The notes below the pieces were generated by a model. The model worked only from the letters and a program-made list of their open reading frames with translations. It searched no databases and was not told the origin of the DNA. Below are positions 6,673 to 23,699 of a DNA stretch of 64,000 nt, one piece after another. The stretch comes from Ylistrum balloti (taxonomy: Eukaryota): positions 310,001 through 374,000 of the forward strand of contig NW_026782013.1 in the NCBI RefSeq assembly GCF_031769215.1, given 5' to 3'. A program made the position numbers and the translations under genes. The stretch's first letter is position 1, and the number at the start of each line of letters is the position of its first letter.

Positions 6673-9600
6673 TCAGTAGGAGCTGAGATCATCATACGCT
6701 CGGTTATCATACGTTATTTTTTCGGCGTCATATACCGGTGCCAGAGTAATTCCATTGGATGTACACTCATCTATGTAGGCAGCTTTACCTTGTTTCGTTG
6801 TGTGCCTAGAAGACATAAAAAAATCACAACATAATTTCAGTAATTAACAACAAAATGGCGTAACTGTACTATGGTGTCAGTGCTCGTCCTCATTTTACCT
6901 CAACATATGTGTCGATCGATTGTAATTTATTTAACTCGTCTTCTAGCTTTCTAAACTTTAGACCCCTAAATTCACTAACGAGACCGAGAAAGACGAGACA
7001 GCTGTTTGGCGTGTAAAAACTACAAGAAACTACCAGTTGATATACAATGGATGTGGAAATTTCTTGTTATTTAGAGGCATGACGTCATCAAAATATTCAA
7101 ACATGAAGTTAAACACTTTAGCAAGGTCCTTGTGAATTGTTTTGATAACCTCTTCGATAAATTCAGCCTCGCACGACAAAAACAAAAAAGTCACCAAATA
7201 GAGGGTCACATATGTCTGTTGGAAGATCTTACCACCAAAATCGACGAAGATGTTGTCAACCAGATAATTTTTTTATGATTTTGTCCTCCATATATTTCAT
7301 CTTTGATTTGGACGTATTTTTCACCAAATACGTTACAGTATAGTTCACAGCCATATATTTGTACCTCCGTTCACCTTTCTTGGAAAAGAACGTTCTCCCA
7401 ACAAGAGAATTATTACGTTCTTTCAGTTTAGCATGGGGTATATTTTGATGTAGAATATTCATTGTTTTGTAAGTATACTGTATCTTATTCTGCAATGCGC
7501 TATAAGGTGGTATTTTCTTGTGTTACGATTTTTGATCAAAATCACTACCATGAATTCGATTACGTATAATACCTGGAAATCATGAGCTGTAATAGTTCTC
7601 GAAAATTGGGTATTGGCAAATGAAAAATTGTATACAGAACAGATGTTTATGTGGCATGTAACCACAAACTAAGTTCTTCACTGACACAGTAGTATATTAA
7701 CGGTAAGTCGGCAGATTTACAGTTTACTTCGCTCAAATCTTTTCACTGGGACTGGGACGGACGCAGCAACATAATTTATTGTCTTAATATCTACTTATCC
7801 ATTGTATGAACCTTTCAACGAATCCATGTTACAAGTGGATTTTGCCAGTTAAATGACTTATTCACTTGTGTGTCTTCTGTACAATCTTACCTGTCAACAC
7901 ATCGAAAACGCATCGACATTTTTTTTCTTTTCAAACAAATGATGTCGATATTCAACTGGAAAAGTTGTGTATTTTCTTTGTGTCTCTCTCTATATATAAA
8001 CAACGTATTGAAAGTTTGTAACGTTTTTCCTGTTTACAAATGATCTCTAGAGACGAGTTTCTTAAATTCTCGTACAGGTAAAATCGAACAGAGACAGCAA
8101 TTTTACTGCGCTATTTAAATCCATGACGTATCGTTGTTTTCATTGTTATGCCTTCTGAATGGGGCAGCCAATAAAAGCGCTCTATGATATATTCACTATA
8201 GACATATACGCACAACATTACATCGACGAAATAACTGGACAGCAGGCTGATTATATATTAAAATAACACACCTTTTCCTTATCAACACGACTGCAGTCGT
8301 GATGGCGAGGACCACCACAACTCCCGCAACTATTCCAATTACAAGAGCATGGTCAGCAGCCCAGTTCTGTAAGTATATATTCACTTGAAAAATAATATTT
8401 ACAGTTACATTTTCGTAGTTAAATTGACTGAATATCAGTCCAACTTCGATGTAAAATCTCACCGTGTGTGGTTAAACGTACTGTTGCATTATACATGAAA
8501 TTCGTATGAAAACGTTGTTAAGGAATACAAGGGAGATAACTCCAACATTATAAACATTACACAGTTACACGACAAACAATCTCTCTATAACATAATTACA
8601 TTATCACATCTGCACAATATAGAGAGACTTCAGTTCTTTTGAAAGCAATTTCCTCCCATAACAAGTTAACCCCAAGAAGATGTTAGACGTTGACAAACAT
8701 GCTCAAGTTACCGGAGAACACAGATTTAGGTAAAGCTGTTAATTTCTTTATACGCAGTACTTTAAATACTAAAACTATATTTCAACTTTAAAACAATTAA
8801 CTATGAATTCGAAATACTAAATATACAAAAACCATCGTCTAGATATATAAGTTAAGATAGAGATCTTTTCAGCGCGTTCGGTTGAGCATAAGCGTACTGA
8901 CCTCTCGTACACTCCATTATTGGATTATATTTTTGCCGTACTTACTATGTTACTGGTAGTTTGTGAATGTGGGTTCCCGTTTTTGACGTACTGTCGAAGT
9001 TGTAGAATAGACACTGTCTTTTGAAGGGCTGCTGCTAAAGCTGTTTTAGAGACATGTAGTCTTGAATTCGTGGAGCTGATGCCAATCGTCAAGTTTGTTA
9101 CCGTCTCACTGGAAATATGGAAACACTGAAATGACTCAAATGCTTTTACAATATTTATTCGTTTTAAGTTGCTCGGGGTCTTGAATTATTTTTGTCATTT
9201 ACACACAATTATCATACGATACACTGTTCGGTTTCGTGATTTTTCTCGATGAAACGACGATTTTTCTTGATCTTTTGCACTTGTATTCAATTCGTAACAT
9301 TGCATGTATTCAAAATTGCATATTCATTATCGTTGAATGTGACCTCGGTAAGGGACAAAGCTTTATGTCGCCTCTGCTACATAATCTTATTGTGCTGATG
9401 CATAGTAACAAATATGCACCATAATTAATTTGTACTTAATCTATAAAAACAAGAAAGGCTAAGAAAAAGTAGTGGTGTTTTTTCCTAAAATGGAAACAGA
9501 TATGTATTATGTTAAAGCAGTTCAACAATACATAACATGACTGGGATAGCATCAATAACTCATTCGTGTGTTGTGAATTAATATATTCTTTCAAAATAAT

Positions 9601-21600: not shown

Positions 21601-23699
21601 NNNNNNNNNNNNNNNNNNNNNNNNNNNNNNNNNNNNNNNNNNNNNNNNNNNNNNNNNNNNNNNNNNNNNNNNNNNNNNNNNNNNNNNNNNNNNTACTTAC
21701 CGAGTTGTGCAAACTTGCATGTAGATATCACATCTACCTTTTAACGAATCACAATACATGTGTTCCGTGTCTTCATATTGCAACAAGTTGATTATCACCC
21801 ACGCCTTCGACGTCAATTTCTAAAAATTCATGTAATATTAAGTGTATAGATATACCCTACATCTAGCTATAACCTACATGTGTTTACATTTGATCGACGA
21901 TGTAACAAATATGGATCTGAAGCCGATTTTCATTTAAGGACAATCTCTCTTTTATATCTCGTGAAAACTTTGATGATACCTTAAATTCATATACACTCTG
22001 CGTTACAACAAATATATTTCAATGTGTGCTGAAGAAATCATGATTAAACCGTAAATGTATTTGATTGTTTACCTATAGCCTTATTAAAGGACTCTTCAGT
22101 ATGATTTTCAACTCCATACTTTAATAAAAATCGATCTAAATCACAACGTAGCGTAGCATTTTCGTGAGAAAACCATGTCTGGATTTCGACAAGCTAACAC
22201 ACCACCAAGAGCTCAAACCGTGTTTCGTTACAAGTCAAATCAAATAAGTTTAAATTGCAACATCAAATCGAAAAGCGAAACGGGGAGTTCAAATTAGAAT
22301 GAATCTTTGAGTATACATACACAAAAAAATGGCAAATAAAATCAATAAGATGTCGAACTCACACACACACACACCCTCACATAACTAAATAATTAAATAC
22401 ACAAAAACGAAACAAAAAAATAATTGTAACGGGGACAATTACATAAATTCCCCAAACTACCCCTTCTGTCGCAAATAAAATGCTTATTAAAATAAGAAAT
22501 AACTTTAATTCACAACTAAGCCTATCTACATTAGAGCAGAGTTCCTCGTCTCTGGTGCACATGCTTTACACCTGAGAGGCAGTTGTGCACGACACCGATA
22601 ATCTATGGCCAGTTAGCAATACCCTGGAAGACGACACTAGAAATACATAACATGAGTGATAGTATACCTATTAAGTGCTCGAGAGCCTCGACATTAACAA
22701 TTGACAATATCAAAGTTAAAACATCTGTGACGGCCATGTCTGTTATTCATTCTTTAAAAAAACTGATTGCACCACTGCTTTCCTTACATTAGACAAGACA
22801 TGCATCAATTTTCATAAAAATTCGGTACCAACAAATCTTCAGTGGCTGCGTCAGTCATCTTGGAATGTGGAAATATGACATGGTTATCACTGCAATCTAG
22901 TTTTCACTGTACAGTAAATCTTCTGAGTGTGATTTACATACTTCAATAATTTACTCATTTGGCTTATAAAAACGAAATACTTACCGATCCTATATCCGTG
23001 CTGCATTTTACCTGCAATTGTAATGAACAACAATTATTTCATTTTAATGACACAATCGATATAAATCTCGATGAAATGTTTGTTTTGATTTGAACTAGAA
23101 CTGTTGAATATTAAGAAACGATAAATAATCTACTTATTGCAATTTTCTCACTTTCCATGGATGCCAGTTTGAAGTCGATGTTCTGTATATAGCTGAAATG
23201 CGTGTTCTGCCGGAAATATTGTTTCATATTTAAGACAATGATTATCAACATATGAAATACTTAAATGATTAGATACAGAATGACTGGGATGAAAGCACTT
23301 TAATACAGTTCGCTTCCTACCATTTTATAGGGCTGTCTCAGTATGTCTACATTATTTAACGTTCCTAAAATTCCAAATGTATTCAGCAATAATTGATATT
23401 TTCACTGCAAATACAGCTATTTAATTTGACAGAAATGAGTGGAAATACGAAAACTTGTTATTTCACTGGAGTAAAATTATCACACCGCAGTGAAATATCA
23501 CTTTAATGTAAAACCTCATGTTTCACAGTGACAACTGTAATAGATTATTTTACGTCAACATTAAAAACAGGTTGAAATACCCTTCCACATTAATATAAAG
23601 TAACGTTACCTGTACATTACGTAGAATCCCTTGCAATAATAGTAACGTCATAAGATTAAACACTAAGTCCCTTGGACTTTTTTCGTATATACTCAACAT
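6673..23699 (-). CDS. DSL-family (Delta/Serrate-like) Notch-ligand-like membrane protein: SP, C2/MNNL-like, DSL, ~52 cbEGF, mucin, SEA-like, TM, tail
   Basis: Exons on the minus strand, 5' to 3': 23699-23610 (MLSIYEKSPRDLVFNLMTLLLLQGILRNVQ); 23011-22985 (VKCSTDIGS); 21819-21701 (KLTSKAWVIINLLQYEDTEHMYCDSLKGRCDIYMQVCTTR); 21249-21129 (KCTKK...NWYLERWSG); 20222-20080 (SFPLSVHIYDYDYLGSDDNLGTIKY...); 19642-19521 (LTFQITVKCLPRYFGPNCTTFCAENAHAHCDVNGSKICQHG); 17732-11498 (FTGDDC, EGF array, S/T/P stalk); 10707-10554; 9108-8946; 8366-8272 (TM ALVIGIVAGVVVVLAITTAVVLIRK); 6805-6673 (tail, TGA). All junctions are GT-AG with matching phases. The EGF exon contains frame breaks as assembled. The two 5'-most exons are the least certain. 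Confidence 0.85.
7060..7460 (-). mobile_element. Degenerate Penelope-like retroelement RT fragment
   Basis: The minus strand reads YLVDNIFVDFGGKIFQQT...SCEAEFIEEVIK, the same family as the fragment at 31.6-32.1 kb. Frameshifted; lies in the last intron of the DSL gene. Confidence 0.55.
11870..17710 (-). repeat. Coding tandem array of 111-bp (37-aa) Ca-binding EGF units, about 52 copies
   Basis: Unit [37 protein letters not shown]. Period 111 bp (e.g. CAGGGGTT at 12854 and 12965). Six-Cys EGF spacing with the N-I-D-D-C and C-x-D-x4-Y-x-C cbEGF consensus. Confidence 0.95.
21508..21693. other. Assembly gap (186 N) inside an intron of the DSL gene
   Basis: Run of N. The flanking exons (21701-21819 and 21129-21249) join in phase, so no coding exon is required in the gap. 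Confidence 0.95.

Follow-up and report, generated by a model that had tools for sequence, protein, structure and literature searches.

Canonical Delta proteins carry 5-9 EGF repeats and Jagged about 16 (PMC3415683), and the ancestral bilaterian Delta had about 9, with conserved spacing and a C-terminal ATEV motif as PDZ ligand (PMC5356439). Taken as a whole, the DSL (Delta/Serrate/LAG-2) proteins are structurally very diverse (PMC5356439). Gazave et al. (2009) listed Delta-type proteins with 0-75 EGFs, a number 'much more variable in protostomes', together with genes made of MNLL and DSL domains only (PMC2770060), and an expansion of DSL/EGF genes in lophotrochozoans has been described, with tandem-DSL genes and a mollusc Delta2 paralogue (PMC8166818). 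Here we describe a gene of this superfamily in the scallop Ylistrum balloti, on the minus strand between positions 23699 and 6673 of a stretch of 64,000 nucleotides. That whole stretch is the window, to which all positions refer: it covers 310,001 to 374,000 of contig NW_026782013.1 (GCF_031769215.1), and starts at record position 310001 of contig JAUZWB010000978.1 (GCA_031769215.1). The kind of protein it encodes is already known. What is new is a conserved, unannotated pectinid gene combining a short-loop DSL domain with an EGF rod, and an increase in EGF number, inside one exon, from 8 to about 50. The first-pass annotation had contrasted the protein with ligands of 8-9 or 14-16 EGFs, a frame that the range of 0-75 in Delta-type proteins makes too narrow.

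The gene is genuine and its head is functional. On balance, we further read it as a gene that is conserved at least among pectinids and encodes a DSL-superfamily membrane protein of type I, in which an EGF1-like module was amplified, the scrambled units of the resulting array are mostly artefact, and the function is non-canonical. Its product would run from a signal peptide through an MNNL/C2 region, a short-loop DSL domain, EGFs of the calcium-binding type, a mucin-like stalk and a juxtamembrane module to a transmembrane (TM) helix and a Tyr-rich tail. Each of the domains first listed from the raw sequence (signal peptide, C2-like, DSL, EGFs, stalk, TM and tail) is indeed present on the minus strand.

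The DSL head and the exons that encode it

The DSL domain lies in exon 5 (19642-19521), which holds cysteines 1-5 and by itself scores 28.8 bits against Pfam DSL (PF01414, cutoff 24.2); the DSL exon of Pecten maximus scores 26.4 bits. Splicing 19521 to 17732 adds GFTGDDC, and with it the sixth DSL cysteine. With this join, the score on a local DSL hidden Markov model (HMM), built from 319 DSLs, rises from 42.0 to 48.5 bits, and its coverage from 36 to all 43 positions. The P. maximus DSL likewise takes its sixth cysteine from the EGF exon. The YYG-type motif reads RYFG here, and exon 5 aligns, with a gap of 4 residues, with the DSLs of Serrate, Jagged1/2 and DLL4 in the Protein Data Bank (PDB). 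The loop between cysteines 3 and 4 has 7 residues, against 11-12 in all 50 of the 50 canonical DSLs sampled, while 7-8 residues are found in many tandem-DSL domains.

Ahead of the DSL domain, three exons encode the MNNL/C2 region. Exon 2 (21819-21701, 119 nt) holds RCDIYMQVC; exon 3 (21249-21129, 121 nt) ends in NWYLERWSG and is 67-71% identical to its counterparts in M. yessoensis and P. maximus, also of 121 nt; exon 4 (20222-20080, SFPLSVHIYDYDYLGSDDNLG) has, in the position equivalent to CBR3, a loop rich in Asp. Scored on a local MNNL profile, made from 61 sequences with the query left out, this region reaches 19.6 bits (E 1.6e-4), and none of 5000 shuffles goes above 11.0; significance was reached only after tandem-DSL proteins had been added to the profile. 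The resulting alignment reproduces the Delta-type pairing proposed by the first-pass annotation for ERWSG|SFPLSVHIYD. The best pairwise match of the region is P0178, a protein with a Pfam MNNL domain (54 bits) and five DSLs, and further MNNL-bearing proteins align with it over the common motifs CD.Y..(V/I)C and NP...W.G.F.L...D.D. A Jagged-dominated C2 profile alone falls short of significance (6.7 bits, rank 8 of 5001), Pfam C2 (PF00168) stays under its cutoff on exon 4 (15 bits, E 0.03), and a search of PDB sequences with exon 2 returned chance antibody matches only. In Jagged, the C2 domain uses aspartates for Ca2+ (PMC5538765); the YDYDYLGSDD loop of exon 4 stands at the equivalent place and may be a lipid or Ca2+ site.

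In all, the gene was rebuilt by hand from the sequence as 11 coding exons, all on the minus strand, with every intron bounded by GT..AG, provided with a pyrimidine tract and compatible in phase; the junctions rest on the genomic sequence and on comparison between species. The hand-spliced joins of the first-pass annotation have thus canonical splice sites and keep the frame. Exon 1 (23699-23610) provides the ATG and a signal-peptide-like N-terminus of 30 codons, with donor CAG|gtaacg; at the same place M. yessoensis and P. maximus have a counterpart of 57% and 43% identity, with the common core LLLQGI..VQ|gtaa. It is followed by a microexon, 1b (23011-22985), of 27 nt and phase 0/0, which encodes VKCSTDIGS between AG/GT flanks and is predicted to be included in the mRNA. 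In the P. maximus locus its counterpart (L002:8093-8043, 82% identity in DNA) is also 27 nt long and in frame (VRCSTNVGS). Two candidates were dropped: an exon at 23214-23150, out of phase and without conservation, and an alternative first exon near 22562, since conservation in three species speaks for exon 1 at 23699. A masked run of 186 N (21508-21693) lies wholly within the intron between exons 2 and 3, 7 nt past the start of the exon 2 donor, gtaagta, which abuts it; the public record is collinear with both its flanks, with unchanged spacing. Record and window differ at 186 positions, exactly as many as the run contains, which shows the run to be a mask. A hidden exon in this run is unlikely, because phases match across it (CG|T) and P. 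maximus joins the same two exons, with equal lengths (119 and 121 nt) and equal spacing of the flanking cysteines.

Exon 6 (17732-11498, 6.2 kb) carries the DSL domain's last part, about 51 EGF units (17703-11865) and, after these, an EGF-like piece that is truncated and a Ser/Thr/Pro stalk (about 11864-11498). The stalk, of about 124 aa, is 49% S+T+P, and a search with it gave no match. Exons 7 (10707-10554) and 8 (9108-8946) form a juxtamembrane module of about 105 aa; a counterpart of exon 7 is found in P. maximus at about L002:400-240. The beta-alpha pattern of the two exons would suit a SEA-like fold, which is a guess. Exon 9 (8366-8272) supplies the TM helix, 23 hydrophobic residues followed by RKR, and exon 10 (6805-6673, with stop codon TGA at 6675-6673) a Tyr-rich cytoplasmic tail of 45 aa, with five Tyr, one YxxL (YDDL) and the C-terminus LSSY, in place of an ATEV-type or PDZ end. 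Neither Pfam nor PDB matches were found for exons 7 and 8 and the tail, and no exon matches a VWC domain.

Spliced as assembled, the coding sequence (CDS) has 7402 nt (1 modulo 3). Taking away the net +67 nt contributed by the irregular EGF units leaves 7335 nt, or 2445 codons. This number is divisible by 3; therefore, the scrambles set aside, the head, the array and the TM and tail exons share one frame. That the EGF exon and the C2/DSL head are parts of one gene is supported by these sequence data: the junction at 17732 completes the DSL domain, and exon 6 fits the phase of its neighbours at both ends after removal of the 67 nt.

The public annotation draws the locus otherwise. It places here a gene for 3886 aa, with its 5' end at window position 18205 (L001:3386), where a mini-exon of 16 nt with an ATG (18190-18205) is joined by splicing to the EGF exon; neither the C2 exons nor the DSL exon are part of it. 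Its product exceeds by about 1400 aa what the present gene could provide. This model is probably a chimera, and may include an open minisatellite of 21 bp or a further gene beyond the start of the window. That minisatellite (about 74 copies, 3858-5395) lies directly past the 3' end of the gene and is open in several frames on both strands. Should the public model be right in its outline, the EGF exon would belong to a separate transcript, and the C2 and DSL exons to another gene or to none; its 5' end at 18205 is what speaks for this. We judge it very improbable. A first exon of 5 codons is typical of ab initio padding, the sixth DSL cysteine comes from the EGF exon in both Y. balloti and P. 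maximus, the head exons keep their phases between species and are under selection, and 3886 aa would require about 4.9 kb of CDS beyond that of the present gene.

Counterparts in other scallops

The DSL gene stands head-to-head with HELT (24820-28940, plus strand), a gene of bHLH-Orange type that encodes a protein 100% identical to 'helt-like' of Y. balloti, with about 1.1 kb between the two start codons. This order is kept in P. maximus, M. yessoensis and Argopecten irradians, where the 10 kb upstream of HELT were probed by tblastn with the spliced head. In P. maximus, the EGF exon is present as well as exons 1, 1b, 2, 3, 4 and 5; in M. yessoensis, the 10 kb contain exons 1-4; A. irradians has exons 2-3, the latter frameshifted. 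None of these head exons is annotated in any of the three. In A. irradians, a reverse-transcriptase-like open reading frame (ORF) is inserted in an intron, and the EGF region lies in several frames (L004:2436-3225 and 4880-5075, minus strand).

Between Y. balloti and P. maximus, the lengths of exons 1 to 5, microexon included, are 90/87, 27/27, 119/119, 121/121, 143/140 and 122/122 nt, with equal phases, and similarity detected by blastn is restricted to exons. Over 366 ungapped nucleotides, dN is 0.19 and dS 1.18, a ratio of 0.16, a comparison that shows, at the level of sequence, purifying selection on the C2 and DSL head.

The P. maximus orthologue has 8 diverse EGFs, followed by a stalk with about six Ser/Thr-rich tandem repeats of 42 aa (L002:732-1907, minus strand). 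Its annotated counterpart, a gene for 271 aa, begins at an internal Met (L002:1088) and is probably only the 3' part of the orthologue. The Y. balloti units are nearest to EGF1 of P. maximus (26/35). Because the orthologue has 8 different EGFs, the array of about 51 units is a recent and lineage-specific amplification of an EGF1-like unit, and the lineage-specific character that the first-pass annotation had proposed is borne out for the array; in the predicted proteins, the spacer between head and membrane is shown to differ between the two species.

A search with the DSL exon among 1.84 billion representative sequences gave no orthologue above about 50% identity, because the C2 and DSL exons are unannotated. 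What it matched were proteins with MNNL and tandem DSLs, at 40-48% identity; one match, P0198, is a bacterial repeat protein and was dismissed. The set P0121-P0205 consists mostly of unnamed proteins with an MNNL-like N-terminus and 3-11 short-loop DSLs, the named ones being cnidarian and automatically labelled 'draper-like'.

The EGF array and its irregular units

The array was first estimated at about 52 EGF repeats, and as a count in this assembly the figure holds: Tandem Repeats Finder (TRF) gives 51.7 copies of a unit of 111 bp between 11932 and 17732, and IDDC codons used as anchors mark 51 units. The assumption of an exon open throughout does not hold, since 8 units are scrambled. The modules with intact six-cysteine spacing number 44. 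According to the ORF list and the frame map, the EGF region is made of six stop-free pieces in two frames. A period of 333 bp fits better than that of 111 bp (91% against 87% matches); the module of 37 aa was amplified partly in blocks of three. The 43 units of exactly 111 bp share 95.3% pairwise identity and fall into three subtypes, KCTL, KCTV and TCTA. For an array of this homogeneity, the copy number is itself uncertain.

As modules, these units are of the calcium-binding kind (cbEGF): 48 match the PROSITE signature [DEQN]-x-[DEQN](2)-C ... C-x-[DN]-x(4)-[FY]-x-C and 49 the Asx-hydroxylation pattern, while Pfam EGF_CA reaches 23.3 bits on the array, with a cutoff of 27. The site C5-xxGx(S/T)Gxx-C6, the EOGT consensus, is present in 47 units. 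The consensus sites for O-fucose and O-glucose (PMC8950332) are found in none. Searched as an ORF of 796 aa, the array returned generic EGF proteins only, the best being a C. gigas 'fibropellin-1-like' protein at 58% identity.

The 8 irregular units depart from 111 bp by +3, -2, +27, +21, +18, -16, +6 and +10 nt, and the pieces that they gain or lack are out-of-register fragments of the unit itself. Three of them remain in frame (15816-15703, +3; 14567-14436, +21; 12546-12430, +6). The others yield 3 frameshifts and 2 in-frame stops. The frame is first broken by a unit of 109 bp (15372-15480, -2), after which a translation begun at the ATG terminates at the stop 15360-15358. Then come a unit with an internal duplication of 31 bp (15123-15260, +27) and a stop at 15161-15159, another with a stop at 13826-13824 (13752-13880, +18), two fused units with 16 nt missing and a frameshift (13435-13640), and a last frameshift at 12087-12207 (+10). 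By contrast, the 42 regular units taken without the diverged last one (4662 bp) show 9 singleton substitutions, none of which creates a stop or removes a cysteine. Because point changes are so few and complex, out-of-register scrambles so many, we favour errors of assembly or consensus: the frame-breaking scrambles are most likely errors of assembly or polishing rather than marks of decay, the latter keeping an appreciable share of the probability.

Further minisatellites are present in the window, at 25472-26499, 32373-34664, 34974-35407, 40961-41578, 51162-51642, 53300-54818 and 60035-61920, with periods of 26, 44/59/103, 29, 48, 46, 54 and 39 bp. Several of them have 0% indels, unlike the EGF array.

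Relation to known DSL proteins and rival explanations

With canonical Delta, the scallop protein shares a signal peptide, an MNNL/C2 region, one DSL domain, EGFs, a single TM helix and a short tail, and the 8 EGFs of P. maximus would also fit. It differs by its shortened DSL loop and lost contacts, by its mucin-like stalk and extra juxtamembrane module, and by the lack of DOS EGFs and of an ATEV end; set against the ancestral Delta, Y. balloti has about 51 EGFs and ends in LSSY. From Serrate/Jagged, with their VWC or cysteine-rich domain and about 16 EGFs, it is set apart by the absence of a VWC match as well as by the number of its EGFs. With the non-canonical Delta-like and DSL-like proteins of protostomes it has in common the lineage-specific combination of DSL and EGF with an atypical number of EGFs, here in a mollusc. 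Those proteins are catalogued gene predictions, whereas the scallop gene is unannotated at its head in four genomes. The mollusc Delta2 is annotated and is said to keep the architecture of Delta1.

The closest DSL matches are the tandem-DSL proteins of cnidarians and bivalves (P0178, P0124 and P0149 among them), which also have a similar C2 region. They have 3-11 DSLs and no regular EGF array, where the scallop protein combines a single DSL with a long rod of EGFs. In bits, the DSL domain scores 49.9 against tandem-DSL proteins and 34.6 against canonical ligands, a gap partly built in, since the tandem set was chosen by similarity to exon 5. Finally, long arrays of cbEGF type are shared with Notch (36 EGFs), fibrillin and the fibropellins of sea urchins, whose modules differ from one another and are for the most part distributed among many exons, whereas the scallop has about 50 modules that are 95% identical, in one exon, without O-fucose or O-glucose sites.

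If the scrambles are errors, the full-length product would have about 2440 aa, and its Ca2+-bound array would form a rod of about 100-150 nm. The head would be the binding part, and the EGF and mucin spacer would set its distance from its own membrane. A protein so built, with its evolvable spacer, is expected to serve surface recognition or adhesion through a lipid- or protein-binding head, or to be at most a weak or modulatory partner of Notch. The first-pass ideas of a long-reach ligand, a decoy or an adhesion molecule are speculative. To be sure, several observations weigh against the reading of an intact, conserved membrane protein with a non-canonical role. In C. elegans, even divergent DSL proteins signal through Notch. 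The ORF ends, as assembled, at codon 999, and other minisatellites of the window carry indels too, so that real rearrangement is conceivable. The P. maximus stalk changes frame once, near L002:1850. In A. irradians, no DSL was found within 10 kb of HELT, and the copy may be decaying, in which case the gene may be dispensable. The head itself is not free of difficulties: with the microexon, its C2 region has an odd number of cysteines, 5, and of the two N-terminal domains expected from the first-pass annotation, DSL is recognized by Pfam as well as locally, while MNNL is recovered by the local profile and Pfam MNNL (PF07657) finds no match in single head exons.

Some of these points would be accommodated at once if the frame breaks were real. 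The locus would then be a young pseudogene, or carry an allele for a secreted C2-DSL-21xEGF protein of 998 aa without stalk, TM and tail, its mRNA probably being a target of nonsense-mediated decay. We hold this to be unlikely, and yet worth serious attention: the assembly does contain 3 frameshifts and 2 stops, tandem arrays do rearrange through slippage, and both the degraded look of the A. irradians copy and the frameshift in the P. maximus stalk go in the same direction. The distribution of the changes is nevertheless unlike neutral decay, with 8 complex scrambles against 9 point singletons and no simple nonsense mutation or 1-bp indel in 4.7 kb, and inserted out-of-register fragments of a unit are typical of consensus or polishing errors in repeats. 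Furthermore, exons 7-10, downstream of the breaks, are intact with canonical sites, and the head is under purifying selection.

The other way to explain the locus, to which we give little credence, is that it encodes a working Notch ligand, a long-reach trans-activator or a cis-inhibitor, with a rod of 50 EGFs holding the C2-DSL head far from the membrane. The Delta-like succession of MNNL/C2, DSL, EGF and TM invites it, as do the Delta-like number of EGFs in P. maximus, the binding of ligand C2 domains to membranes and to Notch (PMC5538765), and the adjacency, in four scallops, of HELT, a member of the Hes/Hey family. In that intergenic region shared with HELT there is no Su(H)-type site (YGTGRGAA), and no enrichment of such sites was seen. 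In human Jagged1, the DSL residues in contact with Notch are F199, R201, R203, D205 and F207 (PMC3415683). Aligned with Jagged1 and Serrate, the Y. balloti domain keeps the equivalent of F199, has A for R201 and N for R203, and has lost D204-F207 by deletion, so that one contact in five remains, in a loop shorter by 4 residues; P. maximus retains only the F and R201. No DOS-type EGF pair directly follows the DSL domain, where the first module is a regular unit of 37 aa as elsewhere, and matches to Pfam EGF_DL_JAG and JAG1-like_EGF2 are scattered over all units instead of being confined to the first two. The ATEV/PDZ motif is missing, and the closer likeness to tandem-DSL proteins, with the reservation made above, points the same way. 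Membership in the DSL family, on the strength of the MNNL/C2 head, the DSL domain, the long EGF rod and the TM helix, thus stands, while the role of a Notch ligand, which the first-pass annotation had entertained, is doubtful, above all that of a canonical trans-activating ligand, as judged from the sequence. A non-canonical role is to be expected because four of the five Jagged1-type contacts are lost and no DOS-type EGFs follow the DSL domain. A variant of the Notch-ligand proposal that we find similarly improbable sees an unannotated Delta-like gene, kept head-to-head with HELT of the Notch pathway, with a head that would work as a module binding Notch or membranes and a spacer that tandem amplification would have retuned in each lineage, with EGFs in Ylistrum and mucin repeats in Pecten. 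If this were true, such retuning would amount to a natural experiment on how the length of an ectodomain relates to the reach or the force of juxtacrine signalling.

Returning to the pectinid-conserved membrane protein that we prefer, its first consequence is a practical one. The diagnostic head is absent from the public models in four scallop genomes, so that surveys of Notch ligands made on annotated proteins would overlook the gene. Homogeneous arrays being unreliable in assemblies, counts of modules and claims of 'giant proteins' need long accurate reads. For the biology of the family, the array, which very recently went from 8 to about 50 modules in a single exon, is a clean example of the growth of an EGF rod. 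If the protein is made at full length, its head would stand about 100 nm or more from the membrane, which raises the question of whether the length of the ectodomain matters for a head of the DSL type.

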